A stretch of DNA of 64,000 nucleotides. Source: Prasinococcaceae sp. CCMP 1430 (lineage: Eukaryota > Plantae > Prasinodermophyta). This document shows, piece after piece, positions 36,530 through 46,700 of this stretch. The stretch is taken from assembly GCA_013416795.1 (NCBI GenBank), contig RQSC01000308.1:1-64000 (forward strand), in the 5' to 3' direction. How positions within the stretch are numbered: the stretch's first letter is position 1; the number at the start of each line of letters is the position of its first letter. The notes beneath the pieces were generated by a model. The model saw only the letters and a program-made list of their open reading frames with translations. It had not been told where the DNA came from and made no database searches. Both the position numbers and the translations under genes were made by a program.

Positions 36530-37840
36530 ATGCCCGCCGCGCCGCGGCTGCTGCCGTCGGCGCCGCCGGCGGGCGAAGCAGGCGCGTGGGAGGAGGTCGC
36601 CGGAGGCGGCGTGACCGAGCCTGCGGGATTCTCCGCGGCTGGCGTCGCCGCGGGGCTGCGGTCGAGCGGCAAGCGCGAGGACCTCTCGCTCGTGCTCTCT
36701 GATCGCCCCGCCGCAGGGGCGGGCTGCTTCACGCAGAACCGCGTGTGCGCCGCGCCCGTCACGTACTGCAAGCAGGCGCTCGAAGCGATGGGCTACGAGG
36801 GCGTGCGCGCGGTGCTCACCAATGCGGGTCAGGCCAACGCCGCCACCGGCGAGCAGGGGTGGGAGGACTCGCTCTCCGGCGCGCAGGCCGCTGCCGACGC
36901 GCTTGGCGTGCCCCGCGACGCCGTCATGGTGATGAGCACGGGCGTCATCGGCCAGCGCATCAAGATGGAGCCCTACCTGGCGTCCATCCCGGACGCGGTG
37001 GCCGCGCTGGGCAGCTCGGCCGAGCATGGCACCGCCGCTGCGGAGGCCATCACGACCACTGATCTCGCGCGCAAGCAGGTGGCCGTGCGCGTCTCCCTGC
37101 CCTCGGGCGGCTCCGTCAGCATCGGCGGCATGGCCAAGGGCTCCGGCATGATCCATCCCAACATGGCGACAATGCTGGGCGTGGTGACCACCGACGCGGC
37201 CGTGGCGCCTGAGGCGTGGCGCAAGATGCTGCGCGCCGCCGTCGCGCGCTCCTACAACCAAATTACCGTCGACGGCGACACCTCGACCAACGACACGGTC
37301 ATTGGCCTCGCCAACGGCGCGGCGGCCGAGGGCGGCGTGCAGCCGATCTCCGACGCGGACAGTGCCGACGGAGCGGCGCTCACGGCTGCGCTCACCGCGG
37401 TGTGCGAGGCTCTGGCCAAGTCAATCGCGTGGGACGGCGAGGGCGCGACGGTGCTCATCGAGGCGAGCGTCACGGGCGCCGCCAGTGACGCCGACGCGCG
37501 CGAGATCGCCAAGTCGGTGTGCGGTTCGAGCCTGGTGAAGAGCGCGGTGTACGGTCGCGATCCCAACTGGGGCCGCATCGCCGCGGCTGCGGGGTACGCT
37601 GGTGTGGAATTCGACCAGGCGGACCTGTCCGTTTGGCTGGGCGAGGCGCAGCTCATGAGCCGCGGCCAGCCGCTCGAATTCGACGAGTCGGCCGCAAGCA
37701 AGTACATGGCTGACGCGGGCGACTGCCGCGGCACCGTGCGCATCGGCGTGCGCGTGGGCGACGGCAGCGGCTCGGGCAAGGCGTGGGGATGCGATCTGAG
37801 CTACGACTATGTCAAAATCAACGCCGAGTATACGACGTAG
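36530..37840 (+). CDS. argJ: ArgJ ornithine/glutamate N-acetyltransferase; true N-terminus or transit peptide uncertain
   Basis: GFSAAGVAAGL, FTQNRVCAAPV, NAGQANAATGEQG, STGVIG, AITTTD, GMAKGSGMIHPNMATML (autoproteolytic Thr), VDGDTSTND, DGEGAT, DPNWGRI, CDLSYDYVKINAEYTT. Confidence 0.96.
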   Translation: MPAAPRLLPSAPPAGEAGAWEEVAGGGVTEPAGFSAAGVAAGLRSSGKREDLSLVLSDRPAAGAGCFTQNRVCAAPVTYCKQALEAMGYEGVRAVLTNAGQANAATGEQGWEDSLSGAQAAADALGVPRDAVMVMSTGVIGQRIKMEPYLASIPDAVAALGSSAEHGTAAAEAITTTDLARKQVAVRVSLPSGGSVSIGGMAKGSGMIHPNMATMLGVVTTDAAVAPEAWRKMLRAAVARSYNQITVDGDTSTNDTVIGLANGAAAEGGVQPISDADSADGAALTAALTAVCEALAKSIAWDGEGATVLIEASVTGAASDADAREIAKSVCGSSLVKSAVYGRDPNWGRIAAAAGYAGVEFDQADLSVWLGEAQLMSRGQPLEFDESAASKYMADAGDCRGTVRIGVRVGDGSGSGKAWGCDLSYDYVKINAEYTT

Positions 37841-37943
37841 TGGGCGGGCGGCGAGCACTAAATATCTGCTATTAGTCATGAGAGCCCTCGCTCCGCAGCG
37901 CCTGCGAGGTGCTCGGGCTATTCTATCGCCTCCGTGCGCGCAC

Positions 37944-40532
37944 TCAGAGGATGAGGCTGACGGCGCACCCCACAGCGGCGTAGGTGAACGCGATGCCCGC
38001 GGCATAGCACAGCGCGCGGAGGACCACGCCCATCCGCCCCACGTTGCCGCTGCCCGCGAAGAGCGCCAGCGTGGTGGGCACCAAGGGGTACACACATGGG
38101 CTCAGGGACGCCAGCAGCCCCCAGGGATAGCACAGCATCACTGTGATCGCTCGCTCTGTGGGCGACGCCTTGCCGCAGTCATCAGGCGAGTCCGCCTGCG
38201 GCGTGCCAGACGCGTGTCCGCGCAGGGGTCAGCAGACGCGAGCATGCGAGCGTCAGCGTGCGCGCGCGGCGCAAGCGGTGGCGCTGGCAGGGACGCACCT
38301 CCGGATCGAGCCCCTTTGCCGCGCGCTCGAGCACCTCGTTCAGCCTCGCAGCCGACAGCTTGCCACGCAGCACCGTCTCTGGTGGTGTGCGGCGCAGATC
38401 GCCTTCACCCGCTGCCATGGTGGTCGCTCGCACAATCACGTACGCCGGCATGCCCCCCGCGCCCCATATCTGATCCTTCAGGGTCGCGCATTCGCTCTGC
38501 CTGTTCGTGGAGTCACACTTGACGCTAACAAAGTCGGCGTCCAGCGTGGAGACGACATCGGCGTCCGCCAGCGTCGTGTAATCGGCGAAGCGGCAGGTCA
38601 CGCACCAGTCAGCGTAAAAATCTACAAAGAGCCCCTTTCCAGCCTCGACAGCGCTTTGCGCGCCCTCGTGCGGGTCAGGCTCCCACGCAATGGCGCTCGG
38701 GGGCGGATCCAGCAGCCGTCCGGGTGCGCGCGAGAATGGCTCCCCTGTGACAGCAAAGCCCCACACGGCAAAGAATGCAACAACGCATGCGATGAGCAGC
38801 GCGGCGGAAGAGAGGAGCGACCGCGCCGTGAGCTCTCGACGGCGCAGCACGGGCAGGCGGCGCTGCCACTTTCGCGGCCTCGTGGCCTCAAGAGCGATCA
38901 TCTCGTCCAGCGGGAGCTCCTCGACCGCGACCCTCCGCAGCAGCGCGCTGCACACAATGAAGACAGCCCAGGCGCCGAAGGAAGTGGCCATCGCGGCGAA
39001 GGCCAGCGTCGCACCGCCGTCCGTGCTCACCAAGAAGTAGGCCGCGCTGATGAGCACGATGAAGCCTGAGTGCACCTTCAGCCTGTCGAGCCACGGACCA
39101 GGCTCGGGCAATCGCGTCACCAGTCCGCTGGCGACGGCCGCGAGAAGCAGTATCGTCGCCAGGCCCATCCCAAAGAGGAACAGCCCCGCCGCGCCCACCA
39201 CGTAGTCGCGCGAGGTGGCGACATACACAAGCACGGAGGCGGCGAAGGGCCCCACGCAGGGCGAGACCACCAGACCGAATGTACAGCCGCGCGCCAGCGC
39301 ACCGAGATAGGTGACGCCGGGCTGTTCGGGGGATCGCTGGGAGCGCGCTTTGGAGACGTCGCCCGCCTGTTCAACGTCCTCTGTGTCCGCCTTGACGCCT
39401 CCTCCCGCGGTAGCCGCGCCCTGTCCCGGGACCAGCCTTTTGAGGATGAAGTTGGGGACCTTGAGGTCGAACAGGCCCCACATTGACAATGCCATGAGAA
39501 TGAGGATGGAAAGAACCACACCCAGCACGGCTGGCTGCGCGAGCACTTGGCCGACGTCCGCTGAGCGCGCGCAGCTCTCAAAAGTGCCGATGCCGTCATC
39601 GCGGCTGACGTCACCGCCAGGCAGCCCGCTACCAGCGTCGCCGCCCTCGTCACCCACGCCAAGCAGTGCGCTCAGATTGCCAGAGCGCGTGGCCAGCTCA
39701 TACGCCTCCAACTCAGAAAGAGTCGCCACGCGAGTGAGATCGGCGTGGATGTCGTACGCAGGCACGCCCGGCGTATCCAGGAGGTACTGGTGCCAGCACA
39801 AATTTGGGCTGCACGAGGAGAAGGCAACCTCCAGAGGCAGCGTGAGCGTTGCGGCCAAAAGGTCGTCTGTGGCATCGGAGACGTTCGCGGGAGCAGCGGC
39901 CATGGTGCTGGACGCATTGACGACGGCCGCTGCGCGCGTGCACATGCGCGTCAACTCGTCAGTCGGGAGTAGAGCGCGCGACGCTTGTTCGCACGTACCG
40001 CGAAATGAAGTTGAGAGCGCGCGTGCATGCGGACGAGCGCGCGGCAACACACACCTCGGAGCTCATCGACGTCTGCAACCTCGCCCACGAGTACCCCAAC
40101 CACCTGTCCGGGTCCCTTGTACTTCGTCGCGTCATAGCTGAAAAAGCGACTCTCGAAGCGCTCCACCAGGGGTAACGGGAAGGTGGCGAGCGCATCAGCC
40201 AGGCCCGCATCGCCGTATGCAGGCGCTCCGATGCGCGCGGCGCGGGCTTCGGTATACGAGTAGCACTGCGGCGCCTCCTCGTTGGAGCAGTCACGTGGCC
40301 CGTAAATGTGGCAGCCCTGCGGCATGCGTAGCCGCACCCACGCCACCACGCGCGCCGCGCCGCCGCTCTCCGAAGCAGCGTAGTATGCGCCGCCGCCATC
40401 GGCGGCCGTCACGCACTCGGCCTCGGCCTCGTACGGTTCGTAGCCCTCTTCGGAGCAGGCGCGCTGCGCCAGCACCGCAGCTAGCACGAACGCCAGCGCC
40501 GCGCATCGCGCGGGCATGCGCGCGCACCGCAT
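37944..40532 (-). CDS. dsbD: DsbD-family thiol:disulfide transporter with permuted TM order (exons 40532-40055, 39929-38299, 38195-37944; about 786 aa)
   Basis: Order is: signal peptide; n-domain (MPQGCHIY, SSCSPNLCW); TM3-8 (LAQP..LSMWGLF, VVSPCVGP, GMGL, LPEPGPWLDRLK); thioredoxin (FVDFYADWCVTC); then, after a GT-AG intron, TM1-2 (GLLASLSPCVYPLVP..YAAGIAFTYAAVG). Confidence 0.88.
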
Positions 40533-41154
40533 GACCGCGCCGCGCCGCGCCAGCGCCAGCGCCGCCGCCGCGCTGCTACGCCACGCGCATGGCGTGTGCC
40601 TCGCCACACGCGCACGCGCGCGCGCGCGTGGCACGCACCCGGCGCTTCGGGGAATCCCTTAACCCCCTTAAGGGGTGCACCCGTTTTCGACCGGAGAAGC
40701 CGCAAAACTGAACCGGATTAAGCCATACTTGTAACCCGGTGACATGCGTTTCGATCCGGGTCTACGCGCGGGGCGAGTAATTGCAATTTGCTCGCGCGTT
40801 CCCCAAGCGTGCGGACTCGGCACGGCACTGGAGGGCAGGCGCCCCCTCCCGCCTCCCGCCCCCCACTGCCCGCTCTCCTCCAGCGCGGCGCACCGTTCGA
40901 CCCAATCCTCGCGCGCGCCCAGCGATCCGACGGCCAGGCGCGCGCGGCCCCTCCCAGTGCGTGGCGCGCTCGCAGCACAGAGCGCGCACGCGCGCGGGCT
41001 GCCGCCCACCGCTGCCTGGCGCGCGTGGGCGCGTGCTCCTCCTCTCCCCCTTCTGCCCTTGCGTGTGCGCGGTCGCGCCGTCGCAGCGGCGGTGGTTTCG
41101 ACGGCGATAGGCGCTGCGGTGATACGCGCGCGGCGACTGCCACGCTTGGCACAC

Positions 41155-42432
41155 ATGTCGGAGGTCGAGGGGTGTCCTGGTTGGTGGGAGTACGAGTCAG
41201 AGGAAGGCGTCCCGTACTTTTTCAACGACGAGACCGAGGAGACGCGCTGGGAGCACCCCTCGCTCGCGGGCGACGGCGGGAGGGTGGCGGGTGACAGCGG
41301 TGGTAATGAAAGCGGTGGCGAGCATGCGCTCGACTTGAGCGGTGCTGTAGCGGGGTCTGAGACGCAGCCGCGAGCGCAAGAGGATGAGTGGGTAGTGGGC
41401 GATGGCGGCGACGGTGGCAGCAGCAGCGGCGATGGCGATGACAAGATGACACAGTTCAAACAGGCTGTCGGCATGCTCAAGTCGCGCGGCGTCTTTGGTG
41501 GCGTCCGGACAGAAGAAATGCGGAGCATTAAGCCCACGCGCAACCGCTTGAGCTCACAATTTTCCGAGTCGAGGGCCATGCTTGCCAAGCTGGGCATCCT
41601 CGACGCGCCCAGTGGCACGGCGGCGCGCGCGGAGATCGAGCAGCGCGTTCCAAACGCTATCACGGAGGAAGACGAGTACGCAGAGAAACCAAAGGGCGAC
41701 GAGGAGCAGGAAATGCCCGTGATCACAGAGGGATTCCGAGACGATGAGGAGGTGGACGCGTTGTCAGCGGTGAAGGCCTCGTCCGCGGCGGAGGCTTCCC
41801 CAGCGCCGGCCACCACCGCCACGTCTAACGTCACCAAGTGGGAGCCCATCGGCGTGGAGGCTGTGTCATTTATTTGCTTCGACGTCGACGAGCGCACGGT
41901 CACAATGCCAATGTGGGCGGCAGGCACCCATGGCAATCTGCAGGTGGGCATGGTGGTGCTCGCCTGGGAGGGCCTGGTGACGTGGGGCCCCACCTCCAAC
42001 GATCCTTTCCTGATCCCCTACGAGAACATGGTCATGTGGACGCTCGACCCGACCGATGCTGCGCTCGACATCACCATGGAAGGCACCTTCGATCCCACGG
42101 CACGGAAGCTGAAACTGCTCACTGGCGAGGTCATCGATCTGCGCGTGTGCCTGCCCACGCCCACCGTGGCCTTCGAGCTCTACAAGTCGCTGAAGGAGGT
42201 GTGCACGCGCGTGGGCAAGGAGAAGCGTGCGCAGCTCGATAAGGAGGCGCTCAGGAGGACCAAGCTGATGGCGGACAAGGTCAAGACACTCGCACTGGCA
42301 GGCATGTCGGGCCGCCAGCGACGTTTGTCCGTCAACGTGAGCGCAAGCGACGCCGCTGCTGACGACGTCGCCGTCGCTGTCAATCAGGCCGCCATACTAA
42401 AGCAGGCCAGGCGGCAGCTCAACGGACAGTGA
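41155..42432 (+). CDS. WW-domain protein with a C-terminal PH-like region
   Basis: GWWEYESEEGVPYFFNDETEETRWEHP (WW). The beta-rich C-terminal segment followed by a helix suggests a PH-like fold (inference). Confidence 0.65.
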   Translation: MSEVEGCPGWWEYESEEGVPYFFNDETEETRWEHPSLAGDGGRVAGDSGGNESGGEHALDLSGAVAGSETQPRAQEDEWVVGDGGDGGSSSGDGDDKMTQFKQAVGMLKSRGVFGGVRTEEMRSIKPTRNRLSSQFSESRAMLAKLGILDAPSGTAARAEIEQRVPNAITEEDEYAEKPKGDEEQEMPVITEGFRDDEEVDALSAVKASSAAEASPAPATTATSNVTKWEPIGVEAVSFICFDVDERTVTMPMWAAGTHGNLQVGMVVLAWEGLVTWGPTSNDPFLIPYENMVMWTLDPTDAALDITMEGTFDPTARKLKLLTGEVIDLRVCLPTPTVAFELYKSLKEVCTRVGKEKRAQLDKEALRRTKLMADKVKTLALAGMSGRQRRLSVNVSASDAAADDVAVAVNQAAILKQARRQLNGQ

Positions 42433-42580
42433 GGCCCCCTCAGCTTCGGGGCGCGTGTGGGCCATGCCAGTGCGCGGATGCACGATTGCCGCTCACGCGT
42501 TGGCAAGGGTGGTACTGTACAGCTTTCGATCACAGGAGGTGGCGGCGGTCGCACAGCACGCTGCTCATGCTTGGAGACGC

Positions 42581-43376
42581 TCAGCGCGCGCGTGCTCGGC
42601 GCGCCCGCGTGCTCGCGCGCTCGGGCACACTACTGAGGGCCTTGGCCATCGCTGCGACCCCGAGCGCCTGCTCGAGCGTCGGCTCGAGGTCCTTGCTAAG
42701 GATCTGGTACGCGTGCTCGCCGGTGTTGCGGCCATCGGCGCGTGGTGCGATGCGCATCTCAGGGAAGTGCTCCGGCGAGCTCGCGTCCACAGCGTAGCCC
42801 AAGCGCGACATGTAAAAACGCGCGGCCCGCGGGTTGTCGCGAAAGACGGTGAGCATGCAGGCACGCATCCCCGCTCCGGCTGCGGCTCGCTCGGCTGCGC
42901 GCATGAGCGCCTCCCCGACGCCGCAGCCACGCGCGTCCGCGGCCACATGCGCCTCGTACACGTAGCACACCGGCGTCGGCTCATCGTTGCGTTCCTCCTC
43001 CACAAATCGCACGAGCACGAAGCCGGCGTACGGCGGCCCCGTGCGCGACGCCTCACCCTCGCACTCTGGCGTCGCGTCAGCCCCGGAAGTTGCCTCGGCG
43101 ACGAGCAGCCTCGAGTCGGCGTGCCGTATCTCGGCGAGCTTGGCCGTGTCATCCCACCCCCAGGTCGCCTCGTGCAGCGAGCGGATGCTCTCGTGCATGA
43201 GCTCGAGCGCCCAGCGCGCGGCCGCGACGCGCTCGGCCTCGCCCAGCCACCGCACGGCGTGGCCTTCGACCCCCCCCTTAGCCCCTGCGGCCTCCGCGAG
43301 GTCCGCCGCCGACATCGCGTTGGCCACGCGCAGCACGAGCGCACAGCGCTCGCCCGCGCGCCGCCGCTTCGCCGCG
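42581..43376 (-). CDS. NAA40: GNAT N-alpha-acetyltransferase, NAA40/NatD-like; 5' end in the gap
   Basis: WGWDDTAKLAEIRH..RLLV, GFVLVRFVEE, CYVYEAHV..ARGCGVG (motif A), MLTVFRDNPRAARFY..LGY.VDASSP, YQILSK. Confidence 0.82.
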
Positions 43377-43701
43377 NNNNNNNNNNNNNNNNNNNNNNNN
43401 NNNNNNNNNNNNNNNNNNNNNNNNNNNNNNNNNNNNNNNNNNNNNNNNNNNNNNNNNNNNNNNNNNNNNNNNNNNNNNNNNNNNNNNNNNNNNNNNNNNN
43501 NNNNNNNNNNNNNNNNNNNNNNNNNNNNNNNNNNNNNNNNNNNNNNNNNNNNNNNNNNNNNNNNNNNNNNNNNNNNNNNNNNNNNNNNNNNNNNNNNNNN
43601 NNNNNNNNNNNNNNNNNNNNNNNNNNNNNNNNNNNNNNNNNNNNNNNNNNNNNNNNNNNNNNNNNNNNNNNNNNNNNNNNNNNNNNNNNNNNNNNNNNNN
43701 N
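43377..43701. other. Assembly gap (325 N) covering the head-to-head starts of NAA40 and POLA1
   Basis: Run of N; both flanking ORFs run into it from opposite strands. Confidence 0.97.
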
Positions 43702-46700
43702 CGGCGGCCGCCCGTCGCGGCGCAACGCGTCGCGCGCCGAAAAGGCAAAGGCGCTGCTCGGGGGGCTCGCGGCCGCGCGAGCGGGCGGCGTGACGCGCGT
43801 GGAGCAGTACGAGTACCAGGAGGAGGAGGACGTGTACGACGCGCTCAACGACGAAGAGTACGCCAAGCACGTCGCGGAGAAGCGCCAGCAGGCCGCGGGA
43901 TTCGTCGAGGATGACGACGGGTTCGGCTACGCCGACATCGGCGAGGAGGAGGACTGGGGAGCCGGCGGTGGCGTGAGCGCGGGCGGCGAGAGCGGCCGCG
44001 CGCGCGCGCAGAAGCGAGCGCGCGCGCAGGAGGCGGCGGCCGCGCGCAAGAAGGCGGCCATGCCGCAGCCCACCGAGCGTGGCCGCATCAGTCGCCTGCT
44101 CGCCGCGAGCGCTCGCGCCGCGCCAGCGAAACGCAAGGCTGCTGCTGGCGTGGACGACAGCGATGCGCTGCTCGAAGATATCCTTAGCGGCCTGGGCACC
44201 GACGCCGGGGACAAGGCCCGGGTGCGCCAGCAGACGCTCGAGCGCAAGGCCAAGATGGCGGCCGCTGGCTCGATTCCAATCGTGCAGCCGAAGGCGGCGG
44301 TGACGGCAGCGGCACTCACTGCGACGCCGCCCAAGCGCGGCGCCGCGGCTGCTGCCGCACGCTTCGCCAAGTCTCCATCGCCCCTCAAGGCCCCAGCACC
44401 TGCCAATGGCCAAGCCATGGAGGAGCCGCCTGATGGGGCCGAGCCCGCAGATCCTCCCGCGTCGGCTCCTGAGACGCCGGCCGCGCCTGCTGCCGCTGAA
44501 CCCTGTGCTGAGCCCGCCGCCGCTCAGCCAGCGCCGGCCGGCGATGCGCAGCCCAGCGCGGCGAAGAAGGCCAGGGTGACCTTTGCGACGGAGGCGGCGC
44601 CCACCGAGAGGGAGTCCGCATGGAAGGCCGCCTGCGACGCCCAGGGGGCATCGCAGGCGCGCGCCGCCGCTGCGGCCGAGGAGGAGGCCCGCGTGGCCGC
44701 GGCGACCACCACCGCCAACAGCAATGACCTCCCCCTCGACGAGGATGGCACGCTCCCGTTCTACTTCACGGACGCCCATGAGGAGATTTTCTCGCCGGGC
44801 ACGGTCTACCTTTTCGGCAAGGTGCCCGTTCAACGCACCTTCGTGAGCTGCTGCGTGGCCGTGCGCAACCTGCAGCGCTGCGTCTTTGTGGTGCCGCGGC
44901 AGGGCATGCTCAGCACGCCCGACATTGCCGAGGCACACGCCGCGCTGCAGAAGCAGCAGGCGGATGGCGACGAGGCCGCTGTGAAGGACGCCAAGCGCAC
45001 GCTCAACATGGCCCTGCACGGCGCGAGCGCACCCTTCAAGGATGAGCTGCGCGCGGCGCTTAACAAGGCAGGCATCGACCAGTACAAGATCAAGTTCGTG
45101 CGTCGCACGTACTGCCTGGAACGCGACGATATCCCCAATGGCGAACAGTGGGTAGTCAAGCTCACCTACCCTGCCAGCAACAACGCGCTCCCAAGTGACC
45201 TCAAGGGCGAGCACATCGCCGCCGCGCTGGGGACGCACGCGAGCGCCATCGAGAACCTGCTCGTCAAGAGGCGCATCATGGGTCCGAGCTGGCTCGCGCT
45301 GAGCAACGCGGAGCGCGTCAACGGCATCAAGGCGAGCTGGTGCACGCTCGAGGTCGACCTCAAGGACAAGAAGGACATCTCCAGCAAGCCCGCCAAGCAC
45401 CGTGCCCCGGCGCCCCTCGTGGTTTGTTCGGTCAGCCTGCGCACAATCGTTAATCCGCGCACCAACGCATCGGAGATCGCGGCCGCGAGCCTCATTACCG
45501 CCGGCAGCGTGCGCTGCGACACGACGACTCCGCGTGCCGAGTGGAACACGCCATCGTATCTGCGCCAGCAGACGCTCGTGCGCCGCCTGGATGGGATGGC
45601 GTTCCCGCACGGCTTCGAGAAGAAGGTGTCCGAGGAGAACAGTCGCGGCATGGGCCGCGTCCTCGAGGCGTGCGCGTCCGAGCGCGCCCTCCTGGTCATG
45701 CTGCTCGCCAAGATCGAGAAGCTCGACCCGGACGTCATCGTGGGCCACAACGTGGCCGGCTTCGACCTGGAGGTGATCATGCAGCGCATGCAGGTCAACA
45801 AGGCCCCGCACTGGAGCCGCATCGGCCGGCTGCGCCGCTCGAAGTTCCCGAAGCTTGGCGCCCCAGGCAGCTCGACCTTCGGCTCCGGTGCGTCGCCAGC
45901 CCTCATGTCGTGTGTGGCTGGCCGCCTGCTGTGCGACACCTATCTCGGTGCTAAGGAGCTCTTGCACGAGGTGAGCTACAGCCTGAAGGCCCTCTCGGAG
46001 ACGCAACTCGGCGAGACCAAGCAGGATATGCCGCCGTCAGAGGTGGTCAAGTCGTACGAGGAACCCGCGAAGCTGGTGGCTCTCACCGAGTCAGGCGTCA
46101 AGGACGCGTGGCTCTCACTTGCACTGATGTTCCACATGAACCAGCTGCCGCTCACCAGGCAGTTGACGGAGCTGTGTGGGAATGTGTGGTCGAAGACGCT
46201 CGGTGGGCAGCGTGCCCAGCGCATCGAGTTCCTGCTGCTGCACGAGTTCCACGCGCGCAAGCACCTGGTGCCGGACCGCCTGCCGAAGTCCGAACGTGAG
46301 CGCGTCGCCAGGGCTGCCGGCCTGAAGCGCAGCGGCGATGACGACTTCGACATGATGCCTCCCGACGACATCGAGGCCGACATCGGCGGTGGCGGTGGCA
46401 CCGGTAAAAAGAGCGCGCGCCGTCGCCAGAAGGCGCAATACGCCGGCGGCCTCGTGCTTGAACCAAAGAAGGGCCTCTATGACGACTTCGTCATCATGAT
46501 GGACTTCAACTCGCTGTACCCATCTATCATCCAGGAGTACAACATCTGCTTCACCACTGTGCCGCTTGCGCGCGCGGCCACTGAAGAGAATGAGGAGGGC
46601 GCCGCCGAGGGCCCGCCGCCTCTGCCCGACGCCGATCTCCCTCCAGGCATCCTGCCGCTGACCATCAAGAAGCTGGTGCAGCGCCGCCGCGAAGTCAAGA

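Follow-up and report, generated by a model that had tools for sequence, protein, structure and literature searches.

The 64,000-nucleotide stretch of Prasinococcaceae sp. CCMP 1430 analysed here (contig RQSC01000308.1, positions 1 to 64,000; hereafter the window) carries on its minus strand, at 40532..37944, a gene for a member of the DsbD/ScsB superfamily in which a catalytic part of the membrane core has changed place. The domain order of the protein is signal peptide, alpha domain, transmembrane helices TM3 to TM8, gamma (thioredoxin) domain and then TM1-TM2, instead of the canonical alpha, TM1 to TM8, gamma. This nuclear gene is real and expressed. The permuted arrangement occurs in several independent genomes, in genes that contain introns and in genes that do not, and it is conserved in a monophyletic eukaryotic (green-algal) clade whose named member is Cymbomonas tetramitiformis. 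Judging from homology, the product is very probably a three-domain trans-membrane thiol-disulfide reductase with a naturally permuted beta (membrane) domain.

The gene has three exons, and its spliced coding sequence of 2361 nt gives 786 amino acids (aa) with one terminal stop. The start codon (ATG, 40532-40530) is the first in-frame ATG after an upstream stop, and the stop codon is a TGA at 37946-37944. The features of the gene are the following, where X1 (a marine metatranscriptome), P0002 (a homologue) and the canonical-DsbD profile are those described below.

40055..40532, minus strand: exon 1, with the start codon, the signal peptide and the first part of the alpha-like N-terminal domain (open reading frame and translation; 3' end from a spliced X1 contig)
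40455-40532, minus strand: signal peptide (aa 1-26), with a hydrophobic h-region
39930..40054, minus strand: intron 1, GT..AG, 125 nt, phase 1
39670..40433, minus strand: alpha-like N-terminal domain (aa 34-246, across intron 1), from the fold match of its P0002 equivalent and cysteine conservation
38299..39929, minus strand: exon 2, with the rest of the alpha domain, a linker, TM3-TM8 and the thioredoxin (gamma) domain (Pfam; canonical-DsbD profile states 264-579)
39796-39813, minus strand: C199-x4-C204 pair of the alpha domain, invariant in the family
39454..39555, minus strand: the protein's first membrane helix, a homologue of DsbD TM3 (profile states 264-314; 41-85% identity in the family)
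39214..39309, minus strand: TM4 (profile), with C384 (codon 39256-39258) in the SPCVGP motif (VVSPCVGPF), a cysteine invariant in the members covering the position
38338..38733, minus strand: gamma domain, thioredoxin fold (Thioredoxin_7, E 7.5e-12), with C602-x-x-C605 at 38593-38604
38607-38593, minus strand: WCVTC (translation)
38196..38298, minus strand: intron 2, GAG/GTGCGT...CGCAG/GCG, 103 nt, phase 0, in the gamma-TM1 linker and skipped by an X1 contig
37944..38195, minus strand: exon 3, with a linker, the relocated TM1, a cytosolic turn, TM2 and the stop codon (Pfam; profile states 193-259)
38067-38156, minus strand: relocated TM1, with C737 at 38094-38096 in SPCVYP (ASLSPCVYPLV)
37947-38033, minus strand: TM2, in exon 3, ahead of the stop codon

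An earlier sequence-only reading of this stretch had described the gene without spelling out intron 1 (40054..39930). The coordinates that it did give, for the TM4 cysteine (39258-39256), the WCVTC motif and the TM1 cysteine (38096-38094), were rechecked and are as it stated, and so is the canonical 103-nt phase-0 intron that it placed at 38298..38196, which is now also seen to be spliced.

The permuted order emerges from two kinds of profile comparison. In Pfam, exon 2 matches DsbD_TM (PF02683) with 87.1 bits, the best stretch covering positions 114-215 of the 219 in the profile, followed by Thioredoxin_7, and exon 3 taken alone matches positions 4-68 of DsbD_TM with 34.6 bits (E 1.6e-8). Both scores pass the gathering cut-off of the family (27.1 bits). 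Aligning the two exons separately, as had been suggested with the sequence-only reading, assigns the later part of the core to exon 2 and its beginning to exon 3. We also built a profile of 609 states from 106 canonical bacterial DsbDs, against which the protein aligns in four segments:

aa 285-335: profile states 264-314, TM3
aa 356-487: profile states 305-433, TM4 onward
aa 547-660: profile states 465-579, TM8 and thioredoxin
aa 719-784: profile states 193-259, TM1-TM2 (41 bits, E 1.6e-14)

Since the TM1-TM2 segment ends at state 259 and the TM3 match starts at state 264, the cut is confined to five states and lies in the short TM2/TM3 loop on the extracytoplasmic side. No hydrophobic segment occurs in the 256 residues that separate the signal peptide from TM3, where TM1-TM2 would be expected. 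Both P-C-x-x-P membrane cysteines are present, one in SPCVYP (C737, TM1) and the other in SPCVGP (C384, TM4). The domain order, the position of the break and the linker devoid of a hydrophobic segment had all been proposed from the letters of the sequence. The profile coordinates and the hydropathy bear them out, and the order is further upheld by the spliced transcripts, the independent genomes and the monophyletic clade presented below.

To look for transcripts, we mapped Logan contigs of four public runs on positions 37800-40700. In X1, the marine metatranscriptome (2016), a 602-nt contig joins 38194/5 to 38298/9, skipping exactly the 103 nt of intron 2, and a 394-nt contig joins 39929 to 40055, skipping the 125 nt of intron 1. 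The depth of X1 is 0.72 in the bin holding most of intron 2 and about 10 in the flanking exon bins. RNA evidence across 38298/38196, which the sequence-only reading had named as a check, is thus provided by a spliced contig joining exon 2 to exon 3. If intron 2 is read through, the frame closes in a short tail without TM1-TM2, and P0001, the product of a prokaryote-style gene caller, is such a read-through lacking TM1-TM2. Together, the RNA and environmental contigs of X1, X2 and X12 differ from the window at 17 positions, 11 of them synonymous and 6 changing an amino acid; all six changes fall in loops or in the alpha domain and none in helices. These differences imply that the contigs stem from a natural population rather than from the data behind the assembly, and the prevalence of synonymous changes over changes in loops and the alpha domain implies that the gene is under purifying selection.

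The permuted order was found in at least five further complete eukaryotic proteins and three fragments. P0002 (750 aa, 60% identical to the window protein) is encoded in a single uninterrupted open reading frame on a 9.8-kb metagenome contig from Tara Oceans. P0003 (777 aa, 37% identical) is annotated as hypothetical protein CYMTET_48259 of C. tetramitiformis; tblastn divides the Cymbomonas gene into about 16 exon segments that follow the order of the protein, the exons for TM1 and TM2 being placed 3' of those for thioredoxin. Exhaustive searching of 1.84 billion representatives with a profile added P0122, P0123 and P0124, as well as the fragments P0121, P0126 and P0149, all with TM3 to TM8, thioredoxin and TM1-TM2 in this order; for bacterial proteins with the algal order, the scope of this search was its best 150 ranks. 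P0122 is a single 1034-aa open reading frame on 10- and 14-kb contigs, beside an SBDS gene, and P0124 comes from a Logan contig (2.7 kb) of run ERR1740126. A homologue search with the family alignment returned no further members, canonical DsbDs having swamped its word pre-filter. Relatives with the TM1 cysteine motif on the C-terminal side of the CxxC domain, which the sequence-only reading had suggested seeking in algal transcriptomes, were therefore found in Cymbomonas and among Tara Oceans and Logan contigs.

The proteins with this order share a single origin in our phylogenetic reconstruction. For a tree of 201 sequences, all proteins were brought into canonical order and then aligned to the profile. 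In it, the six complete proteins of the permuted order are a monophyletic group (support 1.0), nested with 14 canonical-order DsbDs (support 0.92). The one locus checked among these neighbours, P0127, is bacterial, being flanked by AhpC/TSA, SLT and HemN genes. Most likely, gene transfer would have brought in a canonical-order bacterial DsbD, which underwent a single rearrangement before the sampled algal lineages diverged; the rearrangement could have been a duplication plus deletions, or a segmental move. One sub-branch has diversified further, as P0124 (aa ~250-545) and P0126 carry an insertion of about 290 aa between TM7 and TM8, with extra hydrophobic segments and a soluble part whose CPYF motif is reminiscent of glutaredoxins. 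Pfam and PDB sequence searches with the glutaredoxin-like insert of P0124 returned no match.

The position of the cut has consequences for topology. Because it lies in the extracytoplasmic TM2/TM3 loop, and because the gamma domain is on that same side, every helix is expected to keep its canonical direction: alpha outside, TM3 running from out to in, TM8 from in to out, gamma outside, TM1 from out to in and TM2 from in to out. The loops after TM3 and between TM7 and TM8 are rich in lysine and arginine (7 and 8 residues, respectively) and thus basic like the cytosolic loops of DsbD. Together with the signal peptide, these charges fit an arrangement in which alpha and gamma would face the lumen or the outside. 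The break position, the side of the gamma domain and the loop charges are all consistent with the earlier proposal that the permutation preserves helix orientation.

The soluble domains were assessed with structure models of P0002. Its N-terminal domain (residues 45-222), modelled alone with AlphaFold2, is a beta-sandwich (predicted local distance difference test, pLDDT, 82.7; predicted template modelling score, pTM, 0.80). The three best matches of this model among 48,161 PDB chains are ScsB-alpha (6C29, Z 9.1), nDsbD of Neisseria meningitidis (2K0R, Z 8.2) and DsbD-alpha of Escherichia coli (1JPE, Z 7.9), and the next match has a Z of 6.1. In Foldseek, more than 15 nDsbD chains match it at probability 1.00. 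The models thus support an immunoglobulin (Ig)-like alpha domain with a redox cysteine pair, in line with the n-domain that the sequence-only reading had assigned. The thioredoxin domain is confidently modelled by AlphaFold2 in P0002, and E. coli DsbD-gamma (1VRS_D) is its second-best match among the same PDB chains (Z 13.8), which agrees with the Thioredoxin_7 match in identifying gamma as a thioredoxin fold with a CxxC motif. Several results weigh on the other side. Pfam DsbD_N gives no match to the N-terminal domain, and the hhalign comparison of this domain with DsbD-alpha is weak (probability 8%), the strand with the cysteine pair being aligned. The full-length AlphaFold2 model of P0002, computed from a 10-row family alignment, has a mean pLDDT of 62.7, with values below 50 in TM3, TM4 and TM1-TM2. 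Finally, the NCBIfam DsbD model (PRK00293) scores 113 bits with exon 2 of the window, 134 with P0002 and 147 with P0003, below its cut-off of 330.

Within the family, six catalytic cysteines are invariant in every member covering them, i.e., C199 and C204 in alpha, C384 in TM4, C602 and C605 in gamma and C737 in TM1, so that the three pairs are intact, as previously claimed. The relocated TM1 is the best conserved segment (53-80% identity across the family); the values are 46-78% in TM4-TM6, 25-58% in the alpha domain and 9-66% in the linkers. Four extra cysteines of the alpha domain are also conserved (C40, C74, C82 and C90), as expected if the domain folds in an oxidising compartment. The sequence-only reading had speculated that cysteines near the two cut ends (C279 in ESCAR and C780 in GCAV) might staple the opened loop. 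We rejected this disulfide for want of conservation, as C279 recurs only in P0002 and P0122 and C780 is present in this gene alone. A different pair was noticed. Both C279 (39571-39573, just before TM3) and C710 (38173-38175, in the gamma-TM1 linker) are kept in the window protein and in P0002, P0122 has C279 and a cysteine near the C710 position, and P0003 and P0123 have neither. A luminal C279-C710 disulfide joining the two linkers is a possible, if speculative, reading.

Canonical-order DsbDs are the nearest sequence relatives of the algal proteins, and bacterial DsbD (E. coli DipZ/DsbD; PRK00293; DsbD_N + DsbD_TM + Thioredoxin_7) shares with them three domains with a cysteine pair each: an Ig-like alpha, eight membrane helices, of which TM1 and TM4 have P-C-x-x-P cysteines, and a thioredoxin-fold gamma with WCxxC. 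The algal protein differs in having TM1-TM2 after gamma, so that alpha is attached to TM3, and gamma to a helix at either end (TM8 and TM1). It is also eukaryotic, encoded by an intron-containing gene, endowed with an endoplasmic reticulum (ER)-type signal peptide and far below the curated cut-off, and its alpha domain has the four extra conserved cysteines and a C-x4-C pair. ScsB (PMC3322552; alpha structure 6C29) has the same alpha-beta-gamma organisation, with an alpha larger than that of DsbD, and ScsB-alpha is the best structural match of the algal N-terminal domain, a likeness by fold of the P0002 model (Z 9.1); in contrast, ScsB is bacterial and in canonical order. CcdA and plastid CCDA have the DsbD_TM core with its TM1/TM4 cysteine pair, but only six helices in canonical order, with neither alpha nor gamma, and reside in the thylakoid membrane in plants and algae, whereas the algal protein has eight helices plus both soluble domains. 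In eukaryotes, no branch of the superfamily other than CcdA/CCDA has been studied to date (PMC5526843). Cho et al. (2012), who surveyed the superfamily, described only canonical alpha-beta-gamma, beta-gamma or beta organisations (PMC3322552), and a 2026 paper on ER redox defence reports that BLASTP gives no broadly conserved eukaryotic homologue of DsbD/ScsB (PMC13713018). Our literature searches returned no permuted DsbD and no DsbD from prasinophytes, in agreement with the earlier remark that no DsbD with this order had been described.

A different re-ordering exists in DsbD-like proteins of 417-476 aa (P0143, P0147, P0165, P0200, P0215, P0219 and P0229), which we call thioredoxin-first and which came up in the same exhaustive profile search. 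They have no alpha domain, and their intact TM1-TM6 comes after one or two N-terminal helices and a thioredoxin domain; in P0165 and P0200 the N-terminal helices match canonical TM7-8. The one locus checked, that of P0165, is bacterial: on a contig of 59.8 kb, the gene has RecA, Der and Era nearby and, two genes upstream, a gene with a glutaredoxin domain. Like the algal proteins, they have thioredoxin directly upstream of TM1, with a very similar TM1 motif (ASL[ST]PCVYPLIP), and are colinear with the algal gamma-TM1-TM2. Unlike them, they are cut between TM6 and TM7 of the ring and fall outside the clade holding the algal proteins. We considered an origin of the algal order from the thioredoxin-first architecture by duplication and terminal truncation, and rejected it, since the algal clade nests among canonical-order DsbDs with no thioredoxin-first member inside. 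The canonical, thioredoxin-first and algal orders can be described as three cuts of a ring TM1..TM8-gamma, which suggests that the fold tolerates re-circularisation.

Two explanations would make the permutation only apparent. One is that the TM1-TM2 segment was misplaced by assembly or annotation, or is part of another gene. The assembly is draft-like and has runs of N, and X9, the one DNA run holding the whole stretch, may be the assembly's own source. Yet in metatranscriptome contigs of independent origin the thioredoxin and TM1-TM2 exons are spliced together, single open reading frames on unrelated contigs and the Cymbomonas genome show the same order, and there is no run of N near the gene. 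Furthermore, the stop codon of the convergent ArgJ gene is only 103 nt away from that of the DsbD gene, which leaves no room for another gene, so that exon 3 can belong to no other; an artefact is therefore extremely improbable. The other explanation starts from the architecture of the DsbD/CcdA core, which consists of two inverted repeats, each with a P-C-x-x-P helix. Because of this pseudo-symmetry, a partial duplicate of TM4-TM5, added at the C-terminus after TM1-TM2 had been lost, could look like TM1-TM2. We thus compared the tails of six family members with sub-profiles of both hairpins: they score 43-52 bits with TM1-2 and at most 12 bits, mostly less than 5, with TM4-5. This implies that the tail is TM1-TM2, as does the Pfam placement of exon 3 at the beginning of DsbD_TM, and makes the duplicate very unlikely.

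What the permuted protein does, and where, is less constrained. As the helices would keep their canonical orientation, the permuted core could fold like that of DsbD/CcdA and bring the cysteines of TM1 and TM4 face to face. Electrons would then pass from cytosolic thioredoxin to the C737/C384 pair, to gamma, to alpha and to substrates. The latter are expected in the secretory lumen or on the cell surface, given the plain N-terminal signal peptide, the acidic mature N-terminus and the extra conserved cysteines of alpha. The earlier view of a functional enzyme, and not a relic, stands as regards the invariant catalytic cysteines and the conserved TM1, and the function itself comes from homology. 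The protein might instead be conserved without trans-membrane electron transfer, e.g., with beta as an anchor for a luminal oxidoreductase pair of alpha and gamma, or in some other role. The unconfident model of the membrane core and the low scores against the curated DsbD model leave room for this. Nevertheless, neither the membrane cysteines nor their P-C-x-x-P motifs vary in the family, environmental variants spare the helices, and it is hard to explain why a mere anchor would have the relocated TM1 as its most conserved segment; we regard this alternative as improbable. Concerning location, a DsbD-like action in the plastid (thylakoid lumen) has a precedent, in that the characterised eukaryotic members of the superfamily are all plastid CCDA proteins (PMC5526843, PMC3842002). 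However, the window protein, P0002 and P0003 all begin with a short n-region, immediately followed by a hydrophobic h-region that gives way to an acidic mature end, and none of the three has a stretch rich in serine and threonine resembling a transit peptide. Read as ER signal peptides of green algae with primary plastids, these N-termini point to the secretory pathway rather than the plastid, and a plastid location seems unlikely. The broader proposal, that some green algae move reducing power into the secretory lumen or to the cell surface through a bacterial-derived, circularly permuted DsbD whose catalytic TM1-TM2 hairpin would be the last to insert, behind a large luminal domain, is in our view about evenly balanced between true and false.

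The surroundings of the gene have a few features of their own. ArgJ (glutamate N-acetyltransferase; Pfam E 6e-144) is a complete intronless open reading frame at 36530-37840 on the plus strand, convergent with the DsbD gene. Upstream of the DsbD start codon, positions 40536-40640 form a GC-rich, low-complexity stretch where many unrelated X9 contigs align in part (depth up to ~575), which indicates a dispersed simple repeat. The G+C content of the window is 68.2%, near the published value of 69.8% for Prasinoderma coloniale (PMC7455551), and it goes down to 58% in the bin 42001-44000, which holds a 325-nt run of N (43377-43701, ~3 kb upstream of the DsbD gene).

To our knowledge, there are few documented cases of a natural circular permutation running through the catalytic core of a polytopic membrane protein. 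Here, the first of the two inverted repeats in the DsbD/CcdA fold is the one that is cut, and the moved helix carries one of the two electron-moving cysteines. A conserved and expressed clade of such proteins amounts to a natural experiment on membrane-protein folding, in which an essential hairpin inserts after six helices and a folded luminal domain. It is also one on the mechanism of DsbD, because alpha and gamma swap tethers and gamma is doubly tethered. The distribution of the permuted DsbD looks narrow, and it was probably gained by gene transfer. The route of reducing equivalents across the eukaryotic ER membrane is an open question (PMC5751730, PMC7197872), and the green-algal DsbD, complete with alpha, beta and gamma and provided with a signal peptide, offers a candidate for such a conduit that can be tested directly. 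If this is true, a direct homologue of the bacterial trans-membrane disulfide cascade would be at work in a eukaryotic endomembrane.

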